Origin: Oopsacas minuta
Lineage: Eukaryota > Animalia > Porifera
Assembly (NCBI GenBank): GCA_024704765.1
Contig: JAKMXF010000111.1
Coordinates: 636,619 to 700,618 of the forward strand
DNA: 64,000 nucleotides
Direction: 5' to 3'
The position numbers and the translations under genes were made by a program. The notes beneath the pieces were generated by a model. The model worked only from the letters and a program-made list of their open reading frames with translations. It did not search any database and was not told the DNA's origin. Below, piece after piece: positions 14,795-64,000 of this stretch. Numbering within the stretch: position 1 is the stretch's first letter; each line of letters starts with the position of its first letter.

Positions 14795-15823
14795 ATGTTA
14801 GATTGTATTTTTATTATCTTATTATTTTCATCTTTAATCTCTCTCTCTAACACTCTCTCATATGTTAACCCTGTGTTTTCACCTCCGTTCGATTCCCCTA
14901 TAATTCCTTCAGTAATATATGACTCTACATACAATGAGTATGTGCTAACTCTATCAATGAATGGTGTGGATGGCTATGCTGTACAGATATTACATTCTTT
15001 CTCTCCTACAGACTGGATTTCAGATGGTTGGGCTATTCCCAAATTTCCCTGGCTTTGGCATATGGATTCTCAATCATTTAAAGTAGTCCCTCTTTTGAGG
15101 ACACAGTACAATAATATGACTCTCTTGCTTCTTGTATTTTCAGGTGTTCATGAGGATAAACGCTGTATTGGATACGGTATTACTAAGAATCAAGAATTTA
15201 CTACATTTTCTATCAATGAGAACCCACTATATTGTTCCGATAGTATTTCTGATCTATCTCCTTCTCTATACCAGGAGAATTCACGAAGTAAGGTTAATTT
15301 GATATGGAGTGAGAAAGAACTAGATGGAGCTACTCATGTATACAAATCTGTTCTTCGTGTTATGAGAGGAAGACTAGAGATGGAAGATAGCTCAAAGCAA
15401 CACATATTGTCTGCTAGTAATGATTGGGAAGGGAACAGTATATATGCACCTCATCTGTTCAATTTCCAAAACAAATATTATTATCTCTTCTACTCTGGAG
15501 GTAGCGGAGCATCTTCTGGTATAGGCATAGCTCGGGCTAAGTCAATTTCAGATAAATTCGTAAAGTTTATGCGAAACCCGATCCTTCTCTCAGATCCTAA
15601 TGGTAATTCAACAAGTTGGCATGCACCATCATATCCTAGCGTAATAAATACAGGCGATGGAATAGTCACTATGTTCTATCAAGCACTTTCCTATAAGAAC
15701 AGATCTTCCTTGTTGTTAGACCAGTTCTCATATACGCGTGAAAAATGGTTTGAACTTACTCCCGTGTGTGGCACTGATTCTTGGGATTGGTACCCCTCTA
15801 CATGTTATCACACTATTCCTTGA
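14795..15823 (+). CDS. Secreted GH43-like five-bladed beta-propeller protein
   Basis: Signal peptide, YVNPVF, IYAPHLFNFQNKYYYLFYSGG...IGIARAKSISDKFVK..NPIL, and W-F C-terminal blade typical of GH43. Confidence 0.75.
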   Translation: MLDCIFIILLFSSLISLSNTLSYVNPVFSPPFDSPIIPSVIYDSTYNEYVLTLSMNGVDGYAVQILHSFSPTDWISDGWAIPKFPWLWHMDSQSFKVVPLLRTQYNNMTLLLLVFSGVHEDKRCIGYGITKNQEFTTFSINENPLYCSDSISDLSPSLYQENSRSKVNLIWSEKELDGATHVYKSVLRVMRGRLEMEDSSKQHILSASNDWEGNSIYAPHLFNFQNKYYYLFYSGGSGASSGIGIARAKSISDKFVKFMRNPILLSDPNGNSTSWHAPSYPSVINTGDGIVTMFYQALSYKNRSSLLLDQFSYTREKWFELTPVCGTDSWDWYPSTCYHTIP

Positions 15824-51170: not shown

Positions 51171-54100
51171 ATGGACTGGCTACATTTCCTGGAACACAAC
51201 TACACCCCACTACAATTCAATTCTGTCCTAACCTCAAACACAGATCGTTTCTCTCTCATACATCTCAATTTCGGTGAGGTATATTTTGAGGATTTTGCAG
51301 TTATCTACTATCCAGAGGCCCGTAACGAGGATGAGATGGTTAAGCTGAAGCAACAAGGGAGACTTAAGTTATGCTCTGAGACTCTCCTATTCGTACCTCA
51401 TGACTCACTATCTCCTCTCATCAAGATACCTTACAAACACTGTGATACGCTATCTCAATGGAATGGAAAATTTCTTAAAAGCATTCAGCACTGTGTGTAT
51501 GTACGTGCTACAGAGAAGGTATTGTTACTAGAAGGGAATAACATAGGACCTTATGAGCAGGTTAAGAAACGGGAGGGATATCTGTTCCGTGTGTTATATC
51601 AGGATGTTACAGCTGTTCTGCCTAAGATACACCGGCTGTACACCATATGGCATCAACCACAAGGTAGAGTATATGAAAAATCCAATTTGAATGCTAATTA
51701 TATCATTTTATATAGATAAAAGAATACAAGAGACTCTGAGATTATCTCATGAACAGTTTGATCATATTCGTTTCCAAAGTATGTGGTTATCTAACTTGTT
51801 TGAGAAGATTGTGTTTGAGAAAGCTGGCCTCCTCGTATGCCCTATGATTGAGAATCCAGGTCGTATAGCTCTAACCAACAGCTATTTATACTTCCAGCCA
51901 CTCAACAATATTTATGCTGAGCCTGTCATGTCCGTCAAGCTGTCAGACCTAAGATTAGTAGAGAAACGGCGTTATCTACTCACTCATATAGGAATAGAAC
52001 TATTCACCAAAAAAGGTAATTACTGATTTTCCAGATTTTTCAAGTCGTATTTTGCACGAATTTCCCTGCTAATACACCCGAACTTACTATTGAGAAAATA
52101 TTTCAAAAAAGTTGCTATTAGGTGAATACATATTGCTAATAGACGAACATCACTGTATAACGTGTTTATATTCCTTGTTTATTAGATACAAGTATTTTCC
52201 TTGCTCTTGAGACTAACTCATTTCGGGAACATCTATACTCACTCATTCTCAAACAAGAAGACACTAAATTGGAGCTTTTACCGGAACTGACAGTTATGAC
52301 AGATAAATGGTCTTGTAAGGAACTGCCAAACTTTGAGTATTTAATGTTCCTTAATTTCAAAGCTAACAGGAGTTTTAATGATATCACACAATACCCAGTA
52401 CTACCATGGGTAATTACTAATTATGATGGAAAGAAGTTGGATTTGAAAGATCCTTCAGTGTACAGAGATTTATCTAAACCTATAGGAGCAATAAACGCTA
52501 ACAAGTTGGCCATTTTAAAGAAGAGATACAAAGAAATGCCTCCACCTAAGTACCTGTACGGTACTCACTACAGTACTCCTGCTTATGTACTGCATTTCCT
52601 AGTTAGAACAGCTCCGGAGTATTTGCTGTGTTTACAGGTGTGTTCATTATAATAAGGAAGCTTAAATTATTGTTATGTGAATGTGTATTTTAGGATGGAA
52701 AATTTGACTACGCTAATAGAATGTTTCACAGTATTAATGAGACATGGCAGCATGCTCTTACAGGACCCTCTGATGTTAGAGAACTTATTCCTGAGTTCTA
52801 CTTATCTCCAGGAGATTTCTTGCTTAACGATGCTCAGCTCGAGCTGGGGGTAAGGGACTCAGGAACTAAAGTCAATGACGTACAGCTGCCTCCTTGGGCA
52901 AATAACGCTCGTGACTTTACAGCTAAACTGCGAGAAGCCTTAGAAAGTGAGCATGTGACGTCACGACTCCACTTCTGGATAGATCTCGTGTTCGGTTACA
53001 AACAGAGAGGAGAAGAAGCAATCAGAGCTGATAATCTCTTCCACTACATTACATATGAGGGAGCTGTTGATATAGATCCTGTTAATGACCCAATTAAGCA
53101 GAACTCACTTAAAATACAAATTATGGAATTTGGACAAACTCCCACCCAATTATTCATAGAGCCACACTCTTACTCTAAGCTATATAACAGCAATACATCT
53201 ATTGATAAGGTATATTCAACAGTTATGCCGACTGCTAATAACAACAACAACATAGCTATTACTCCTGTTATGGTATCCTATAATGATTGGGATGGAATAT
53301 CTCAACTCAGTTTTGAGATATCATACAAACTACATAAAGACAGTATGACAGCAGTCAGCACTCTGCCAAAGCAGAATTCTATCGTATCAGTATCTAAGGA
53401 CCATACACTGAAAATATTCTCCCTCACTAGTCAACAACAGACCAGAAGCACTGTGCTATCCAGTATGGCCCTCTCTTCTTGTCTAGTAATGCCTAATGAG
53501 GATACTATTGTTGTAGGATCATGGGATAACAGTATATACTTCTACTCTGTTGAATATGCTGATGTGTTGCATTGTATGCCTGCACATGACAGTTCTGTCA
53601 CTTGTCTGGCCTGGAGTAGTAATATACTCGTTACAGGATCATGGGATACTTCTGTTAAGGTCAGTATTCAATTGTTATATATAGTGGCTATTAGTTAATT
53701 GTATATTTTCCAGATATGGGATTACACCCCTACCAAAGGGGCGGGACCAATCAACACCCCTCAGATCCGAGGAGATCTTGATCATGACTGTGAGCTAACC
53801 AGTGTTGATATAGATAGTACTGGTGCTCTGCTAGTATCAGGCTGTGCAGATGGTAGTGTATGTCTTTGGGATGCACAGTCTATGGAGAAGATAGCAGAGA
53901 AGAGAATTTCTGCTACTTCTGTATGTTCATGTCTATTCAGTCCAGACAGCAAGTCTCTTGCTGTATGTACAGAAGATGGTATGATACATATATACTCAGT
54001 AGCTGAGGGACTACCACTGATTACAACCAGGAGTCCAGGAGAGCAGTGTAGCTCTATGTTATGGAATGGAGAGTATATTCTATGTGGTGGAATGAGTGGG

Positions 54101-54250
54101 ACATTATCAATACTCTCACTAAAATCTACAGTCACACTAGCAAAGAGAGATGCACATCAATCTGCCATCAGTGCTATTTCTGTAAATAATGACATGCAAG
54201 TTGTAGTTACCGCATCTACTGATAGGAATGTATCTGTTTGGAAGTTTTAA
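51171..54250 (+). CDS. NSMAF: Protein FAN (GRAM, BEACH, WD40), exons 51171-51663, 51716-52015, 52186-52637, 52694-53659, 53714-54250
   Basis: RFSLIHLNFGEVYFEDF, NRSFNDITQYPVLPWVI, YGTHYSTP, DVRELIPEFY, EFGQTPTQLF, WD40 repeats; all introns GT-AG and in frame. Confidence 0.95.
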
Positions 54251-54450
54251 CAATTGACTCTAAGAACCGTTGATATGCTGACAGAATACAGTTGAGAGAA
54301 ACGCCCGGTCCTTATTAGTTACTCCGGATATTGTTGTATATTTTGGTACATTTCACAAGTCCTATTTTTGTGTATAGAATTTATATAATTTCTATACAGG
54401 CTAGTGTTTAATATTTCCAATAATTGTAATTATCATTTCTTTGTCTGTTT

Positions 54451-55342
54451 ATGGATAGAATTGTAGCTAGCTCGATGACAGCAGTAATCGCATTGAAAGA
54501 TTTTGAGGTTAGCAATTTCCTATCTTATTCATTTAATAATTATCCTATATGACATCTCTAGGAGTTGTCGCATAATTCTCTTATAGGTTATTGTCCACAG
54601 CAAAGTCGCAAAGGCAGGATGGTCTCTCCTGAAGAGATTGCTTTTCTTCTTTCCCGGAGATTGTCAAAATACTGAAGCAGCTATGAAGGCTGCTAAATGT
54701 CACCAATTCATAACATGGTCATATGAGAATACGCTTGATATATTAGCCAATAGATTTCCAAATCGTATTATCTGTCTATGTAAGCCGAACTATCTCCATT
54801 TAAATAATTTTGCTTGTTATGATGCGTTCGTTGAAAAGGCGACTACTTTCGGTGATCCTAAATACTCTCCCTCAGTCAAGAGCTTTACTTCTCTATCTTG
54901 TTGTATCGATACACTTTGTAAAGAGAAATATATCGCAGAGTGTATAGATGAAATATCTGTAATGGGATTCAGTAAAGGTTGTATTGTATTGAATCAGCTG
55001 GTATATGAAATACAGATGGGTTTTCAAGATGAGAATATTGCTCAGTTTATTTCCATGCTTAGAGAATTCTATTGGTTAGATGGTGGACATAATGGTACTG
55101 CTGAAATATGGATCAGTGATTTAAATATACTTGAAAGTTTCGCGAGAATTAATCCAAGAATTTACATTGGTGTAACTCCTTACCAAATGAAGTCAGTGGT
55201 TAAATCCTGGGCTGCTAAAGAGAAAAGGAAATTTGTTGAGAGACTAGAGAGTGTGGGTGTGAAAGAAGTTGAAGTTGTTGAACACTTTTTCGATGCGCCA
55301 CCATCCCTAGAAAATCACTTTAATATTTTAAGCAATTTTTGA
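54451..55342 (+). CDS. C2orf69: UPF0565 protein C2orf69 homolog, exons 54451-54507 and 54587-55342
   Basis: FFPGDCQN, NRFPN, GFSKGCIVLNQL, YWLDGGH, VTPYQ, PPSLENHF. Confidence 0.92.
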
Positions 55343-55466
55343 CTGATAATTCATTTTACTTAATCTTTCGTTTATTTGTTGTGTAATAGATATTTGCAAA
55401 GCTAGTACATAGTTGATATGAGAGCTATTCAAAACAACATTTATTCGCATTTCTATCTGTTTTTAG

Positions 55467-58400
55467 GGAGATTTTGATGATAAAGAGTATGTAGAGAGGT
55501 TAGCTAGAGTGGATAATAATGTGAATCTCGGGCCTCTAAAAAAGCCAGAAGAATTTTGCCCAGATGTGAGTTACTACTGTAAAATATTTTTAAGCGAATG
55601 TTATACATTTGTATTTCTTCCCACATCAGGCACTTTTGAAATCTTTCCAAGAGAGTATAATTGTATTGAACCAGCTAAAAACGAAGAATCAAAAGAAAGT
55701 AGATAAGATTGAGAAGCAGTGTTATATTATTGCAAAGGAACATGATGATAACTTGAAAAAGCAGAGATTAATTTTTCAGGTAGATTCTCTACCAATCCTT
55801 AATAATTACTAATTATACATATAGTATACTCTCATTATAACGAGGGCTCGGGACCTCGGATTCATTTTGTTTTCTGCGGGGGTAAAATCAATTACTTTCA
55901 AGCTATAGGGGATAATATCACTTCGTTTTAATGACGATTTCATTATACCCGACTTGGTTATCACGGGAGTTTACTGTACTTCTTCCTATCAGGACTCTTT
56001 CAGAACTTATGAACAACTCGAGTTAAAGGTCAGAACTATGGCTGCTAAAGTTGTTCATCTTGGAGATCAACTGGAAACTGCGAATAAGAAAAAGAATAAG
56101 ACCGATGAAGCTCTACAACTGATAAAGTATTTTAATATATTTCAGAGGAATGAAGAGAATGAAACTAAACTATTTTCAAACAATTCACAGGCAAACCTTA
56201 CGCTATATTACATTATCTGTCTGTTCTCCTATTGTTGTTTATAGCTGTTTATTAGGTATTTGAAGCAGCAAAAGTACTAGACATCCTTACCTCTTTCGCC
56301 ACTGACCTTCCTGACAAGTAATTAATTAATATTATACATTGCTAGACAATATGTAACTAATATATACTTCTATAGATATACAGAGGTTAGGAGTAGAATC
56401 GAAGGTAAGATTGTGTGTGTTTATTACAGATTTGTATCATTCCCATTATTTCAATCAGCTTAGCTAATTACCCTTCTAGCCAAATCTCGAGATACCGAGA
56501 AGAGTTTATTGAAAGAATTCCACCATGCTCACACTCACAATGATACAGAACGAATGCGAAAATGTGGACAAACTCTATCTCTCTTCCCAAAGGTAATTAA
56601 TATCTATAACAGTGGCTGATTATCAGACTTAGTTAATGTATAAATAATTGCTGTCTTTCAATTGAACTTTAATCAATTGATGTATTTCTTAATACTTCTC
56701 ATTACGTGTGAGCTGGCTTCAGGTAGTATTGTTGTTCTACGAAGTGATTATACACTAACAGCCTACTGAGGTTAAGAATCTTCCCATGTGCTCTTTATGC
56801 ATTTGAATGCTTTAAAATCAGTTTTTCAAAAATTATACAAATTAATCGCGGTTATGAATTTCAGAAATTTGAGGTTATTCTTTCGATCACTTTCAAATGA
56901 GATTAGTGTATTCTTCAGGCTATCAGTTCCGATATATCTAACAGCTCTATGCACTGAAACAATTGGTATACTTTCTATTATATTTGCTGGGCAGTTTGAC
57001 GATCAGAGCGTATCTCTCTCTGCTGTAGCACTCTCTCAAGCTTTTATTAATATTACCGGATATTTTCCTATGCTAACATTAACCTCAGCAGTAGACAGGC
57101 TATTCACTAAATCAGATGTAATAGGTAGGAACAAATACACAGGATTGTTGCTACAACGCAGTTTGCTTGTTAACGCATACTTAATGTTACCTATTGCGTT
57201 TATATGGCTGAATACAGAGAATATTATGCTATTACTCAGACAGCCTCCAGAGCTATCAGCACTAGCGGGAGAGTATGTAACCGTTTACATAGCTATTCTC
57301 CCTGCTCTCTGCGTATCATCAGCTGTTGTCAAGACACTACAATTACAAGAAGTAATAATACCTTCCCTACTGATACTCATGTCTGCTAATTTTATAGAAG
57401 TTGTAATCGTATATCCACTCGCGTATTTCACGGATATTGGAGTACGTGCATTTGCTTTAGGCCCGGTTATAGCATTTTATTTTATAGCGATATCTCACTG
57501 TATGTATCTGCGCTGTGTTAAAATATGGAAAAGAATTTGGTGTGGATTTTCCTTCGAAGCATGGGAGAGCTGGTGTCAATATATTTGTTACGGGGTACCG
57601 TTGTTGTTAGTCAATCTACTGGAGATTGTTAGTATTCAGTCAGGTGCATTTATTCTTGGTATTGCATCTTATCAGCCAGTTGTTGACATTGGTATTCACG
57701 TGGTCGCGACTTGTATCAATTCTTTGATTTCAGTAAGCTGTATGTCTCTCTCATTAGCTACTTCTATTCGTCTTTCACAGCTCAGCTATGAGAGTCAGAG
57801 AAAAAGAATCAAAAAGATAGTTATCAACAGTTTAATAGCTATTATCATTATTTCACTATCTCAATCGGTTATCCTAGCTGCTGGTAGCCAGTTCTGGGGT
57901 AGAGTATTCTCCTCTGATCTCCGAGTAGCATCAGGCCTAGCTAATATATTATTTCTATTAGCTGCATATCATCCTTTTGAAGGTTTACTCATCCTATTTC
58001 AAGCTGTACTTAATGGTTTAAGAAGACACCATGTGAATAGCATATTTACATTATTTTTCTGTGTAGTCAGTTTCCCTATAGCTATCATTCTTGCTATGTT
58101 CTTGCCTGATCAAGCACTTGGATATTGGGTTGGGATAACCACCGGATACTTTACACGAATTGTTCTTTATATTGCCATTACAATTGTATACTTATCTGTT
58201 ATAAGCACTGTTTCTTATGCTCAGACAAGAATCAAAGAATCAACTCCACTCGTAGCTAATGATATTCCTCAACATACTGAGATTCCTTGTTATATATCTA
58301 CTGTTGGTGGTTTTGGATGCCTAAAATGGAAAATATTTCTTCTGAAGATTTTGTTGTTATTGGTGTTAGTAATACCATTCATTCCGCTAATAGGATGTCG

Positions 58401-61400
58401 CTACAGTACATACAAGAAAGAAATCTACAATATTAGTTATATACAAGCTCCTCTTGATGTTTTCTGTTTGATATTTTTACCCTTCAACTACACTATCCCT
58501 CTCAACCAAACGATTTAGTTTTACGGTTTAAATATACTTATATTTTCTAATTTCTAAATAATTCATATCATTACAATATGCAACGACTACGTAATAAATG
58601 ATTTGTGGATAGATATCATGTGAACTGGATTACAGTCATATGGCAGTAAGACTATTGTGAATTATGTAATACCCTAAGTTGTAAACCGATGCTATCCAGG
58701 TGCAGTATCATTGAAAATACACAGTATGTATTATATCATATTTTGTATACCAATTATCAACGTCAACAAAATAATAGTAATGACCATGCAATTGACTATT
58801 ATTTGTAAATATGAATGTAGTTAATTCAGTACTAATAATTACACATTATGAACAACATCCAGACTTAGTCTTCCCATGTTCTAACTCAACATGAGACGTT
58901 ACACCGATATTCCCATTCGCCTCTTCTTGCTCGAGTGCATTTCTTGCTATTGCTTCGAAAGCTTGCTCGACATTAATTGCTTCTTTAGCGGAGGTTTCGA
59001 AATAAGGGGTGTTGTTTTTAGAATCACACCATGCTTGTGCGCGTCTTATAGGGACGCCCCGAGTATCTAGGTCAACTTTGTTCCCTAACACAACGAATGG
59101 GAGCTTTTCTGGATACCTAGGGCTAGCCTGAATCAAAAAATCATCTCTCCATGATTCTAGATTCTTAAATGAGTTGGGTTGTGTTACGTCATACACCAGC
59201 ACACAACAATCAGCTCCGCGGTAGAACGCCACGCCAAGGGACTGAAAACGCTCTTGTCCAGCTGTGTCCCAGATCTGTAGAGTAACCAATCTGTCATCTA
59301 TCATTACTTCCTTATTGAGGAAATCTGCTCCAATTGTTGCCTTGTATTTATTCGTAAACTTCTTCTTGACATACTGGTTCATTAGTGAGGTCTTACCTAC
59401 ACCAGAATCTCCCAGAATAATAACTTTAAGTAGGACATTTCTTCTTGAACTCATAGAATGTGCCTTGGCTAATAGACAGTCTAATTTCGAGAATTGACAA
59501 TACTAATATTATATGATGTATTGGCAGTTATTAATTTTATTGTTTCAACGCCTATTATTTATCTCTCTTTCCCTTTATTCACGTTATATATTATCTTTTA
59601 GAATTATGAGAGATGTATACAGGATTTTATAAACCAAGGCACAAAGGTAGGCGAATAATTATATCTTAGGGAATAATTAGATATGTTTGAACCTAGTGTA
59701 TAGCTGCCCCTCCCTGTTAGAACCCAAGTATCCTCTCTACACTATTATCCAATTCCAAATACATATTTGTAAATTTAACGAAGATAGGCAACAGGAATTC
59801 TGTATCATCTAACCAGTGGGATATTCAGCACATTATTTCACAAATAATAATTATACTTAATCAATATTCAAGTCACTGAACTGGAGAACTATATTTATTG
59901 CTGTAGTATAATATTTTGTACATAGTAGTGCCTTTTGAAGATATTAAGTAACTAGCATATTATGTTACAAATATCATACACAGTATTGAACTACCTCTAC
60001 TCCCACTCGAGTAGAATTCTAATAGAATTGTTTGTTAGTGAATGAGACACACTGTCTTTAATATTTCTATCCACATGATAGCCATTTATATAAAGCGGAA
60101 TTTGTATGTATTATCTCTGTTTCCATCAATTTTATATTATTTCCTAAAGTTAAACTCACACGAATTCTAATCCATGATTTTGCAATGATTTTTTTGTAAT
60201 TTTCAGTTTGGATCATTTTCTAGATTGAATTTAAAGGGAAGATTACCCTCTTCAATCAGACCACACAACTATGTCATAAGGTTTGTTTTCGTAGAATTAT
60301 TTCTTTGCAATTTATTTATCGGCGACAGGCAACATAGTTGAATACCGAGATAGCATCCGGCGCCTACCTGTGCTCCATTTAATATACAAATTGATGTATT
60401 GTTTGCTTGAAAGAATAACAAATTATAAATTATCTTCTATTTTGCAAATTTCAGATATTTGCCCCAGCGCTTGGACTCAAATTTTTAGAAAATGGAATTG
60501 TCCAATGTAGTTTATACGTTTATATTTTTTTATAATTCAATAGTTGTACTCTTTCTATCTCGCTAACTACTCTTATATATTTGTTGTTTACGTGTATAAT
60601 TAGCACTGACGATATTCAATATATAATAGTAAATTAATTATCCAACATCAGGCATGTCTAGTTCCTCGGATTCCCCAACCAATGTTCGTAGCTTTACTAA
60701 ACAGAACTTTTTCAATTTCAAAGCATCAGTTATAAAGCCAGCAGGTACACTGTATTCTGATGCTAATTCTTCTCCCAACAATAAATCCACTAATAACAAA
60801 TCACAGGGATTTTCATTTCTCAAACTTGATTCATCTCTTACAGCAAGTGAGATATTACCTGTAGTTGGAGATAATGTAACTACAAATCCTAATCTAAATG
60901 CTAAAGAGATTTCTGATATAAATCCACTTCAACATACAGAACCTAAAGCTTCGAGGAAAGATACAGAAGAAGATTCACATACTTCAAAAGATCCAAAAGT
61001 ATACGTGTTCGGTCAGAAAATAGAGGCAAGGGTTGTTATCCACGAAGCAGAGGCTAGTGAGCCACCAAGCCAGGACGTTAAATCCAGTGCTACAGACGGA
61101 ATAATTCCTAGCGACAATGCTAAACCTCTACTAGGTTCTTTACCTGTACAGAAAGTATTCACAGGGGAAGAGGGAGAGAGAGTAATAGTGGAGATATCCT
61201 GTAAACTGTTTGTGTTCGATTCTAAGAACAAGACATGGCATAGCAAAGGTAGGAACATGTTACACCTGAATGAAGATCCTGATTGCGAGCATAAATCTAG
61301 GATCATTTGTAGGGCGCAAGGCAATCAATTAGTACAGCTGAACTCTCCTATATGGGCTGAAATGCTGTGTGAGCAATCTAACCCAAACTCAGTAAAGTTA

Positions 61401-63081
61401 TCTGCTAATCTAGAGAATGATGGTATCCGTGTAGTGCTGATTCAAGGAGAGAAGAGAGATATATCTAATCTGTTCTCTGCTCTCGAAACAAGAATACTTA
61501 ACTGTAACAATCATAAGGAAGCAACAGCCAAATCTCAACAATCAGACGAAATTGACCTAATCGATACACCAGATATCCCATCTCCAAGAACTCCGACCTC
61601 CCAAGAAACTATCTCTAACAAACGCCCTCTCTGCTCAAAACGATCCACTGTGGAACGAGACGAGCCTAAAGACAATCCTGTCCTAACCAACTCTACTCGA
61701 GACCCTGAGGAAGATGAAGCACAGAATTCATGTAAAAGATCTAAAATTAGCGAGTCTTCCAATCAATGAATTACCCTACTTATTAACATTAGATTAATAC
61801 AACACTTCGCGCTAGAGCTTTCTTCAGTCATTTCTAATTTAATCAGAATATGATAATACGAGCTATGCTTTCCCAATAAAAGTTTCATTGATTGTGTCCT
61901 AATTAACAAGATTCTTTCTACACACATTTTACGATTGATATTTAACAAATATTTTTTGTGTAAATTAATACAGAAAAACAATAAAATCTCTTTCAAGATT
62001 TTTTAATATTACAACTGAGTTGTTCTCTTTTAGACACAGAAAATAATTCTGGATACATTCGATAATCCGGAACAAGTAACTTCTGCTTTTGTGACTCAAG
62101 TATTTGACAAGATAATCAAGGTAAGCCCAATACAAAATATGATAATGGTAATCAGTGAAACCTCCACAAACGGAGCCTGTGGAAAAGGGGAACTTAGAAA
62201 TCCGCTCAATTTTTCACTCCTTGGCACGGAGTAAAAGTAGCGCGGATTCCTAGTCCCATACAAATGAACCTCCACAAAAGGCGGAATTTAGCAGAAACCG
62301 GGTAGCATTTTCGGCGTCCTGACACTCAGTTTATGGCGGTTACACTGTATATTCAGATCTTATTTTCTATTAGACGCATGTAAAAGATGAGTTGAGGGAC
62401 ATCAATAAAGAGACAGACATAGACGAGTATCTGTCAAAGCTGTCAGATCTATATGACAAGTATGTAACATTTATTCTATTATTTGTTATGTATTATTTTG
62501 ATAACATTGTATAGGACAACATTATTGGGTCGAAAGTTAGTTGATTATGAAATGATTCAGGATACACCTACTGCCACCAAACAAATAAAGAACCTCTTCT
62601 ATGACTATCTACATAATTATGCTGAGTGAGTTCATGAACTTTTTTATTTTCCCATGTTTTTAAACTCATAATTTTAGAGAGGAAATCCATAATTTCGGTA
62701 CAAAAGGAAGGACTGAATTAGAAGAGTATTATAAGGTTCTATTTGACACTACAGGAATGCAGAAGAAAGCTACAACAACTTCAAGCGGAGGCTACAAACC
62801 TAGGAGGGAGACAATAAGAAATGTTACTGTAGATGTCCTATTCGTTTCTCAGGATTTTATAACTAACATTCTCAGTGCAACTAAACAGTGTATCAACCGT
62901 TGTAAAGTTGTACGTAGCAGATTTTTTATTATTTGTCTATCTCAATATCATCTAATTTATTCTTGTTACTAGCTGTGTAATCCTAATGAACTCTCTGTTA
63001 CTGTCAAGTTAATATACAAGACAATGATGGAGCTGATATGTAGAGATCATCTGGACTATGCAGTTAAACTCGCACTCACAG
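55467..63081 (+). CDS. EXOC5: Exocyst component 5 (Sec10), partial: first exon unresolved, gene continues past the window. Exons include 55467-55565, 55630-55779, 55993-56190, 56256-56317, 56376-56404, 56480-56592, 59602-59646, 60224-60280, 62034-62120, 62374-62459, 62515-62625, ~62678-62909, ~62972-63081
   Basis: Spliced translation is colinear with Sec10: [101 protein letters not shown]. Confidence 0.92.
55822..55976. mobile_element. pogo/Tigger-like MITE flanked by TA, in EXOC5 intron 55780-55992
   Basis: Left (t)agtatactctcattataacg versus right-end reverse complement cagtaaactcccgtgataacc; TA on both flanks. Confidence 0.6.
56797..58518 (+). CDS. MATE family (SLC47-like) transporter, intronless, nested in EXOC5 intron 56593-59601; start codon uncertain (56797 or 56854)
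   Basis: [59 protein letters not shown], ~12 TM segments. Confidence 0.92.
   Translation: MHLNALKSVFQKLYKLIAVMNFRNLRLFFRSLSNEISVFFRLSVPIYLTALCTETIGILSIIFAGQFDDQSVSLSAVALSQAFINITGYFPMLTLTSAVDRLFTKSDVIGRNKYTGLLLQRSLLVNAYLMLPIAFIWLNTENIMLLLRQPPELSALAGEYVTVYIAILPALCVSSAVVKTLQLQEVIIPSLLILMSANFIEVVIVYPLAYFTDIGVRAFALGPVIAFYFIAISHCMYLRCVKIWKRIWCGFSFEAWESWCQYICYGVPLLLVNLLEIVSIQSGAFILGIASYQPVVDIGIHVVATCINSLISVSCMSLSLATSIRLSQLSYESQRKRIKKIVINSLIAIIIISLSQSVILAAGSQFWGRVFSSDLRVASGLANILFLLAAYHPFEGLLILFQAVLNGLRRHHVNSIFTLFFCVVSFPIAIILAMFLPDQALGYWVGITTGYFTRIVLYIAITIVYLSVISTVSYAQTRIKESTPLVANDIPQHTEIPCYISTVGGFGCLKWKIFLLKILLLLVLVIPFIPLIGCRYSTYKKEIYNISYIQAPLDVFCLIFLPFNYTIPLNQTI
58846..59454 (-). CDS. RAB7A: Ras-related protein Rab7, intronless, antisense-nested in EXOC5 intron 56593-59601
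   Basis: [66 protein letters not shown]-terminal CCS prenylation motif. Confidence 0.97.
60654..61769 (+). CDS. RANBP3: Ran-binding protein 3-like (RanBD), intronless, nested in EXOC5 intron 60281-62033
   Basis: FNFK and YVFGQKI motifs; Ran[47 protein letters not shown]. Confidence 0.85.
   Translation: MSSSSDSPTNVRSFTKQNFFNFKASVIKPAGTLYSDANSSPNNKSTNNKSQGFSFLKLDSSLTASEILPVVGDNVTTNPNLNAKEISDINPLQHTEPKASRKDTEEDSHTSKDPKVYVFGQKIEARVVIHEAEASEPPSQDVKSSATDGIIPSDNAKPLLGSLPVQKVFTGEEGERVIVEISCKLFVFDSKNKTWHSKGRNMLHLNEDPDCEHKSRIICRAQGNQLVQLNSPIWAEMLCEQSNPNSVKLSANLENDGIRVVLIQGEKRDISNLFSALETRILNCNNHKEATAKSQQSDEIDLIDTPDIPSPRTPTSQETISNKRPLCSKRSTVERDEPKDNPVLTNSTRDPEEDEAQNSCKRSKISESSNQ
62153..62347. mobile_element. 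pogo/Tigger-like MITE in EXOC5 intron 62121-62373
   Basis: TIRs cagtgaaacctccacaa versus reverse complement cagtgtaaccgccataa; right flank TA; internal copy aacctccacaaa. Confidence 0.7.
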
Positions 63082-63198
63082 GCAAGTTCATACATCAATA
63101 AATATGAATATGAAATAATGAATTGTTGGATAACCGGAATGTCTGGATCCATTTCTCTACCTATCTATTATTCTATTATCAATTGACTTAATCTATGA

Positions 63199-64000
63199 AT
63201 GAGTCGCAACAAACATAACAAACAAGTTGCTTCTAGAAAGAGTACTCCTGCTCAGCTTCCTAATATTTGTATATTTCAGTTGGGATCGTCTGATACAGGA
63301 GAGGAACTCCCTAAACATGGTGTATATCTTTATTCACACTCCTCCTCTCCCTATCTTCTCTGTGTCTCACTGGATAAGCTACTAGTGATCGACAGTTCTG
63401 ACAGAGAGCTGTATGCAGAGTATAAAGCAACTGAGGACATGTTTAGCTCAGTAATAGAATATACAGGTCTCATATTGGTAGGCAGTGTACTAGGTTATGT
63501 ATATTCAATCAGTTTAGCAAACTTCCATTGCAGTCCTCCCATACATGTCCATGATGGTTCTGTTATTCAATTGATAGCTCATCCAGTAGAGAATACATGG
63601 ATTGCTAGTATTGGCGGAGACGGGTATCTGAAGCTGATAAATATGCAAGATGATATGAGCAAGTTCAAACGAGTACACGACAGGTTCTTACTTCAGCTAA
63701 AGATTTCGGGGGAAGCTAGTGCTATGTCATTCTCTCCTCAAGGAGATTGGTTGTTGACCAGCTACGATAATGGAATAAGAGCATGGGAGATTGAGAGGAA
63801 GAACTTGAGCAAGGATAAGCGGTTCAGAAAGACAGCTCCTCCTTTCTCTGTTCAGTTATATGGTAGTAAATTCCATCAGTCTACAGTGGAGCGTATCGTG
63901 TTTATAAGAGATGACGTAGTAGCTTCTAAAGACAAGATAGAACAGTGTGTCCTATTGTGGAAGTTTGACATTGATGCAGACGTATGGCGTATGAGTAGTA
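63199..64000 (+). CDS. WD40-repeat protein, EED/ESC-like, 3' truncated by the window edge (absent from the ORF track)
   Basis: Uninterrupted frame of 267 codons from ATG 63199: HDGSVIQLIAHPVENTWIASIGGDGYLKLIN, SFSPQGDWLLTS, FHQSTVERIVFIRDDVVASKD..CVLLWK. These resemble EED HGNAINELKFHP...SKDHALRLWN and IHRNYVDCVRW..ILSKSCE..CWK. Confidence 0.75.
   Translation, partial: MSRNKHNKQVASRKSTPAQLPNICIFQLGSSDTGEELPKHGVYLYSHSSSPYLLCVSLDKLLVIDSSDRELYAEYKATEDMFSSVIEYTGLILVGSVLGYVYSISLANFHCSPPIHVHDGSVIQLIAHPVENTWIASIGGDGYLKLINMQDDMSKFKRVHDRFLLQLKISGEASAMSFSPQGDWLLTSYDNGIRAWEIERKNLSKDKRFRKTAPPFSVQLYGSKFHQSTVERIVFIRDDVVASKDKIEQCVLLWKFDIDADVWRMSS

Follow-up and report, generated by a model that had tools for sequence, protein, structure and literature searches.

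Introduction

At the cholinergic locus, the gene for VAChT lies inside the first intron of ChAT on the same strand; the two have a common non-coding 5' exon and promoter, and alternative splicing selects the protein. The spliced-leader operons of nematodes and tunicates are another known arrangement of tightly packed same-strand genes. Here we describe a locus with likenesses to both, EXOC5 (Sec10) of the glass sponge Oopsacas minuta (Hexactinellida). The stretch analyzed, called the window below, is 64,000 nucleotides (nt) of contig JAKMXF010000111.1 (1.93 Mb) in assembly GCA_024704765.1. Six other genes sit within five introns of EXOC5, four of them on the host strand and two on the opposite strand. 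We conclude with high confidence that EXOC5 itself is a single, conventional and intact gene, whose 21 exons are spread over ~11.9 kb and joined by cis-splicing around the genes that five of its introns host.

As at the cholinergic locus, a same-strand gene in the first intron of the host, C2orf69, appears to use the first exon of that host. The shared exon is non-coding at the cholinergic locus, whereas here both proteins would take their first 11 residues from it; in addition, EXOC5 and C2orf69 are functionally unrelated, and the C2orf69 junction is one that we infer. As in spliced-leader operons, same-strand genes are tightly packed, and a candidate leader is found at the acceptor of one guest. 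Unlike the genes of such operons, the EXOC5 guests lie inside introns with the host exons cis-spliced around them, the candidate leader junctions number one, and a polycistronic precursor is hypothetical.

Nested genes are already known in glass sponges. In Aphrocallistes vastus there are 2432 of them, 12.4% of genes, against only 83 in the O. minuta annotation, a low count that was blamed on annotation software disallowing nested predictions (Francis et al. 2023, PMC10282587). The same study reports that the two species have extensive microsynteny, and it describes a trans-spliced leader ~37 nt long (PMC10282587); the paper on the O. minuta genome does not mention nested genes. Like the nested genes described in A. 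vastus, the EXOC5 guests are complete, mostly single-exon genes in host introns of a compact hexactinellid genome, their arrangement is kept between species, and their host is broken up by automatic annotation. That study gives genome-wide counts and does not describe the EXOC5 locus (PMC10282587), whereas here six genes are spread over five introns of a gene with a 2.1-kb coding sequence. What is new is the corrected structure of EXOC5 and a first coding exon that is likely shared.

Results and Discussion

Structure of the EXOC5 gene

EXOC5 extends from window position 54475 to extended position 66375, with its final 2.4 kb outside the window. The open reading frame (ORF) of one guest, RAB7, matches the source assembly letter for letter, and sequence 3' of the window came from an overlapping locus, L001, which is identical at 15155 of 15155 overlap bases and adds 5.4 kb. 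Extended coordinates carry on the window numbering, a window position being 69455 minus the L001 position. Exons (Table 1) were placed with the ORF of a 714-amino-acid (aa) Trinity transcript product of Vazella pourtalesii as guide (EukProt EP00800), reached from a search with exon 4. The resulting coding sequence has 2145 nt (33 nt in exon 1 and 2112 nt in exons 2-21) and specifies 714 aa with no internal stop. Its product is colinear with the Vazella ORF at 87.7% identity over 714/714 residues, and from end to end it shares 33% identity with a 715-aa metazoan Sec10. In Pfam, exon 4 alone matches Sec10_N (PF20667, E=3.6e-10), as does the Vazella ortholog (E=3.7e-15). The latter also matches Sec10_HB (PF07393, E=1.6e-91), a family found on all three public O. 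minuta gene fragments at this locus, and the 715-aa animal Sec10 carries both domains, as does the Vazella protein. All introns are GT-AG except two that are GC-AG (donors at 56191 and 63082). Most measure 52-75 nt, and those between exons 2 and 7 measure 58-213 nt. There is nothing recognizable inside introns 3 (213 nt) and 8 (577 nt), and a search of 54000-64000 against Rfam at E<=0.1 gave no match, so that introns 3, 8 and 10 are without a known RNA family.

The start of the gene lies one exon upstream of where an earlier note on this DNA had put it, at 54475 rather than 55467. A first exon near 55467 was considered and rejected: C2orf69 and 55467 are separated by 124 nt, in which there is no donor and the single ATG is out of frame. 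Exon 1 was found upstream of C2orf69. The Vazella transcript joins this exon to the counterpart of exon 2 (MTAAVTLIDFE/GDFNDTEYVERL; slashes here and below mark splice boundaries), and exon 1 aligns with the N-terminus of Sec10 from other animals, which together argue that it belongs to EXOC5. The same transcript joins ...LSLT/VMKSS across the counterpart of intron 14. A side observation concerns an in-frame ATG of O. minuta at 54451, eight codons upstream of the conserved start (MDRIVASS-MTAV…), which is the one chosen by the public model; the stretch upstream of the conserved start is gapped in the aligned relatives, whose exon 1 matches begin at the conserved M.

Host splicing around the guest genes

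Four read runs were examined at the O. minuta locus over 56470-62469. Two of these, X1 and X3, are even over exons and introns and thus DNA-like. In run X4, which we take to be RNA, one contig carries exons 7, 8 and 9 at equal contig depth, with joints at 56592>59602 (skipping 3009 nt) and 59646>60224 (skipping 577 nt); both have GT..AG ends, which fall where predicted when the cut is shifted by +2. A second X4 contig joins 62120>62374 and skips 62121-62373, again with GT..AG ends. At intron 9, a loose end after 60280 reads ACACAGAAAATAATT, the first 15 letters of exon 10, and a loose end before 62034 reads CAACTATGTCATA, 13 letters from the end of exon 9. Further loose ends in X4 connect exon 6 with 7 and exon 11 with 12. 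O. minuta RNA thus contains exon-exon joints across introns 6-11. Over the same region the DNA-like runs X1 and X3 contain none of the X4 splice joints, from which it follows that the spliced form is not present as DNA.

We propose that the host pre-mRNA is read through its guests and that its exons are joined by ordinary cis-splicing at strong GT-AG sites and the two GC-AG sites, five EXOC5 introns presumably having been colonized by other genes. Ordinary cis-splicing suffices for this arrangement, and no unusual splicing mechanism is needed or shown. With four same-strand guests, and exons of 45 and 57 nt between genes, the locus is a compact test case for the coexistence of host splicing and guest polyadenylation.

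Several points weigh against this reading. Run X4 was taken as RNA from its behavior rather than from a record of its type: its depth is nil in intron 8 and uneven elsewhere, and its ends are adaptor-tailed. For intron 9 the support is a reciprocal pair of short loose ends (15 and 13 letters) rather than a listed joint. As the RNA spans 56470-62469, the O. minuta joints of introns 1, 14 and 15 are predicted from the Vazella transcript and from conservation. The C2orf69 start could come from a spliced leader with an AUG instead of from exon 1, and this is the main alternative to exon sharing. Finally, the independence of guest promoters is putative, as contigs cannot show transcript starts, ends or strand.

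A quite different view is implied by the NCBI annotation, which splits the locus into three models: C2orf69 with Sec10 and MatE (965 aa), Ran_BP1 with Sec10_HB (556 aa), and Sec10_HB (215 aa). Taken at face value, these would make the EXOC5 pieces separate genes or decaying fragments, which we consider hardly credible. The RNA joints cross the supposed gene boundaries, the first of which is thereby refuted; Vazella has a single 714-aa transcript ORF; and the public models fuse unrelated families, having been made with a version of Augustus that does not predict nested genes by default. The public annotation cuts the locus into three chimeric models and is without a correct EXOC5, C2orf69, MATE or RanBP3-like protein. 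Chimeric models of this kind distort the tally of genes, the tables of orthologs and any claims of gene loss in a genome that is used in the debate on early animal evolution.

Much of a single intact EXOC5 had been anticipated in the earlier note. All exon coordinates it gave are exact, including 59602-59646 and 60224-60280, which are flanked by AG and GT. MATE (+) and RAB7 (-) do lie tail to tail in intron 56593-59601, and the RNA contig skips exactly those 3009 nt; RanBP3-like (+) lies, as it had said, in intron 60281-62033, across which the reciprocal RNA loose ends run. It had also, tentatively, placed the WD40 gene in the intron opening at 63082, on the grounds that only about 60% of Sec10 is encoded by that point. 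The point reached is residue 470 of 714 (66%), and exon 15 was indeed found downstream at extended 64390-64513. Its nesting of four genes in three introns was right in kind and short in number, as C2orf69 and the 216-aa gene bring the guests to six in five introns. Three ways in which the idea might have failed had been named. Against pieces in separate transcripts, exons 7-8-9 lie in one contig and exons 9 and 10 are linked by loose ends. Against a pseudogene, the 714-aa frame is open, nonsynonymous differences (pN) are far below synonymous ones (pS), and four genomes have the layout in common. Against a gene ending before 63199, inspection of the downstream sequence in L001 yielded the remaining seven exons.

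Micro-exons are limited to about 27-30 nt when strictly defined and to 51 nt when loosely defined. By those limits exon 8 (45 nt) is a micro-exon in the loose sense only and exon 9 (57 nt) in neither sense. The lengths given earlier for these two host exons between guests are correct; the strict label is not.

The guest genes

Five of the guests (MATE, RAB7, RanBP3-like, WD40 and the 216-aa gene) are complete single-exon genes. The ORFs of all six are intact and have orthologs at the same site in two or three other genomes, at 44-89% identity. The best PDB matches of RAB7 are to Rab-7a (E=2e-98), those to Rab9 being far weaker, and RanBP3-like has a PDB match to the Ran-binding domain of RanBP3 (E=3e-22). 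For the 216-aa guest there is no significant sequence match in Pfam or PDB; a fold and feature search of the ESM Atlas leads to small eukaryotic RecA/Rad51-like P-loop proteins. The stop codon of this gene is only 33 nt from host exon 15 (extended 64514-64547; L001 4908-4941), so its 3' untranslated end must overlap exon 15 in antisense. Between the end of C2orf69 or of the WD40 gene and the host acceptor that follows it (124 and 93 nt, respectively) there is no AATAAA or ATTAAA. RNA contigs from X4 lie on MATE (contig 56563-58480), RAB7 and RanBP3-like. MATE and RAB7 fall wholly between RNA-joined host exons, and RanBP3-like falls between exons linked by the reciprocal loose ends.

Table 1. 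Exons and guest-bearing introns of EXOC5, and the genes within them. Positions are those of the window or, where marked ext., its extended numbering.
Feature	Position	Strand	Remarks
EXOC5 exon 1	54475-54507	+	MTAVIALKDFE; donor GTTAGC; peptide match to Vazella transcript N-terminus
EXOC5 exon 2	55467-55565	+	stop-free model colinear with Vazella
EXOC5 exon 3	55630-55779	+	stop-free model colinear with Vazella
EXOC5 exon 4	55993-56190	+	model; Sec10_N; GC donor at 56191
EXOC5 exon 5	56256-56317	+	model colinear with Vazella
EXOC5 exon 6	56376-56404	+	29 nt, shortest exon of the gene
EXOC5 exon 7	56480-56592	+	donor AAG/GTAATT; RNA loose end from exon 6
EXOC5 exon 8	59602-59646	+	45 nt; acceptor TTTTAG/AAT, donor AAG/GTAGGC; RNA joints on both sides, one contig
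EXOC5 exon 9	60224-60280	+	57 nt; acceptor TTCTAG/ATT, donor AAG/GTTTGT; RNA joint and loose end
EXOC5 exon 10	62034-62120	+	acceptor TTTTAG/ACA
EXOC5 exon 11	62374-62459	+	RNA joint from 62120
EXOC5 exon 12	62515-62625	+	model; RNA loose end from exon 11
EXOC5 exon 13	62678-62909	+	model
EXOC5 exon 14	62973-63081	+	GC donor CAG/GCAAGT at 63081/63082
EXOC5 exon 15	ext. 64390-64513 (L001 4942-5065)	+	Vazella-guided; beyond the window
EXOC5 exons 16-18	ext. 65455-65541, 65600-65711, 65774-65930	+	Vazella-guided
EXOC5 exons 19-21	ext. 65987-66045, 66113-66214, 66283-66375	+	Vazella-guided; last exon with stop codon
EXOC5 intron 1	54508-55466	+	959 nt; holds C2orf69
EXOC5 intron 7	56593-59601	+	3009 nt; holds MATE and RAB7, tail to tail
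EXOC5 intron 9	60281-62033	+	1753 nt; holds RanBP3-like
EXOC5 intron 14	63082 to ext. 64389	+	1308 nt; holds WD40 gene
EXOC5 intron 15	ext. 64514-65454	+	941 nt; holds 216-aa gene (-)
C2orf69 body	54587-55342	+	intron 1; Pfam C2orf69, E=5e-50
MATE-family transporter	56854-58518 (ORF 56788/56854-58518)	+	single exon, 554 aa; Pfam MatE
RAB7	58846-59454	-	single exon, 202 aa; tail to tail with MATE
RanBP3-like	60654-61769	+	single exon, 371 aa; Pfam Ran_BP1; AATAAA at 61875
WD40-repeat gene	63199 to ext. 64296 (L001 5159-6256, minus strand there)	+	single exon, 365 aa; Pfam WD40
216-aa gene	ext. 64547-65197	-	intron 15; RecA/Rad51-like by fold

Conservation in other glass-sponge-like assemblies

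For comparison we used long contigs of three glass-sponge-like ENA assemblies (L002, L003 and L004), which were reached via MATE orthologs. Their gene order is C2orf69, Sec10 exons 2-7, MATE, RAB7 (-), two short exons and RanBP3-like, continuing with exons 10-14, WD40, exon 15, the 216-aa gene (-) and the last Sec10 exons. The only departure from this layout is in L002, which lacks the RAB7 that is present in L003 and L004. In this most divergent relative RAB7 is nowhere in the 21.7 kb available, and exon 8 follows 120 nt after MATE (L002 11687-11805), which indicates that RAB7 was gained or lost in intron 7 after the layout arose. The MATE orthologs (542-561 aa, 55-72% identity) and the WD40 orthologs (57-68% identity, found only in glass-sponge-like assemblies) occupy the same position in all three contigs. 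Exon 1 with its GT donor is conserved in L002, L003 and L004, and in 4/4 genomes the 45- and 57-nt exons are unchanged in length and bordered by AG and GT. Across genome pairs these short exons, 8 and 9, have a pS of 0.55-0.90 against a pN of 0.08-0.15. Synonymous sites are near saturation, so the arrangement must be old; the layout has held while synonymous sites saturated.

C2orf69 and the first exon of EXOC5

C2orf69 is the guest that appears to be without a start codon of its own. Its frame opens at the acceptor TATAG/G (54586/54587), and the first ATG comes 32 codons later, at 54683. This opening exactly at the acceptor, with the TAG of the acceptor closing the frame, is found in 4/4 genomes. 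The 32 codons before the ATG include a block, FFxGDxQ, that is invariant in 9/9 aligned C2orf69 proteins (from molluscs, an annelid and others), and they have a pS of 0.64-0.85 against a pN of 0.05-0.19. Because these codons are conserved and under selection they must be translated, and the start codon must therefore come from upstream. The sole candidate for it in the DNA is EXOC5 exon 1, which precedes the first ATG of C2orf69 by 176 nt. The exon 1 donor and the C2orf69 acceptor are both in phase 0, and they are 79-116 nt apart across the four genomes (79 nt in O. minuta), a normal intron size for EXOC5. The junction 54507>54587 is also the one used by the public model LOD99_194, made by BRAKER1/Augustus with RNA-seq hints.

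From these sequence comparisons it seems somewhat more probable than otherwise that one first coding exon and one promoter serve both C2orf69 and EXOC5, with splicing choosing between the two. The 33-nt host exon 1 would be spliced over the 79-nt intron to 54587, and exon 1 would then be followed by either the C2orf69 body or EXOC5 exon 2. If true, such exon sharing would tie together the regulation of two conserved but unrelated proteins of a basal animal by way of a coding exon that they have in common. A transcript of C2orf69 from Vazella was sought in the protein collection and none was found.

We give less weight to the alternative that C2orf69 is independent of exon 1 and takes its start either from a leader trans-spliced at 54587 or from the ATG at 54683; this is unlikely, if a serious contender. 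A spliced leader has been reported in glass sponges (PMC10282587), and ORF callers in other assemblies take a 219-aa C2orf69 ORF from the ATG. However, a start at 54683 would lose the invariant FFxGDxQ block, which is under purifying selection here, the candidate leader has no ATG in its 20 known 3' letters, and the exon 1 donor stands in phase just 79-116 nt upstream in 4/4 genomes.

The host promoter is probably formed by blocks upstream of exon 1. As a side observation, blocks at 54296-54400 that are conserved in O. minuta, L004 and L003 read ACGCCCGGTCCTTA, GGTACATT and TTTATATAATTTCTATACA. The idea that ACGCCCGGTCCTTA is a general promoter word in the window was rejected, with 3 loose matches against ~1 expected.

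Expression of the guest genes

One X4 contig has 18 foreign letters, TCTTCATAAAAAACTTAC, joined at the acceptor TTAG/CACTG (60603/60604; window 60585-60604), which precedes the RanBP3-like ATG by 50 nt. The 69 kb examined contain no match to these letters, even when up to 2 mismatches are allowed. We regard TCTTCATAAAAAACTTAC as a candidate spliced-leader 3' end, which would fit the leader report in glass sponges (PMC10282587); the leader sequence itself is not printed in the glass-sponge papers. A 1919-nt X4 contig (56563-58480) matches the genome colinearly from host exon 7, across the donor of that exon, into MATE; it represents either host pre-mRNA that is unspliced or a transcript of MATE with its start in the host exon. 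In Vazella, a second isoform (471 aa, TRINITY_DN1063_c0_g1_i3) encodes exons 1-14 and ends at the intron 14 donor (…LSLTG), indicating that some host RNA reads into the WD40-bearing intron.

These observations could be taken to mean that the whole locus is one transcription unit with a single promoter, which by cis-splicing, a shared exon 1 and leader trans-splicing would yield up to five unrelated proteins. The same-strand guests would then be promoterless and be cut from EXOC5 pre-mRNA by leader trans-splicing and polyadenylation, with MATE, RanBP3-like and WD40 coming from introns still in the host pre-mRNA. The foreign letters at the RanBP3-like acceptor, the unspliced contig running into MATE and the 471-aa Vazella isoform would all fit, as would the short gaps from host donor to guest ATG (117-373 nt) and the spliced-leader trans-splicing known from glass sponges (PMC10282587). 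We nevertheless find a single unit improbable. Any pre-mRNA is expected to give unspliced contigs, and contigs are blind to transcript starts and ends. In the ~50 nt ahead of the WD40 ATG there is no AG, and the two guests on the opposite strand must have promoters of their own. Moreover, conserved non-coding blocks occur upstream of MATE and WD40 within the host introns, and these look like promoters belonging to the guests. They include the motif AACCGGAA, which lies 60-80 nt before the WD40 ATG in 4/4 genomes (window 63125-63150); its consensus is TTGTTG(G/A)(A/G)(T/A)AACC(G/T)GAAT, with an ETS-like CCGGAA core in 3/4 genomes.

A repeat in intron 10 and DNA of a probable relative

Intron 10 of EXOC5 (253 nt) contains a short repeat family at about 62153-62318, at ~10-15x single-copy depth in the DNA-like runs. 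Its flanks, 62153-62185 and 62246-62281, are common to many contigs and the letters between them vary; a second copy is absent from the 69 kb examined. One apparent joint in the fourth run, X5, at 59280>62153, has non-splice ends (AG..AT) and abuts this repeat, and was set aside as repeat-related. Run X5, which bears a second organism code, is 95-99% identical to the locus over 56695-61357, differing by numerous substitutions and small indels; its depth is low and even, and it is probably DNA of another Oopsacas population or of a close species.

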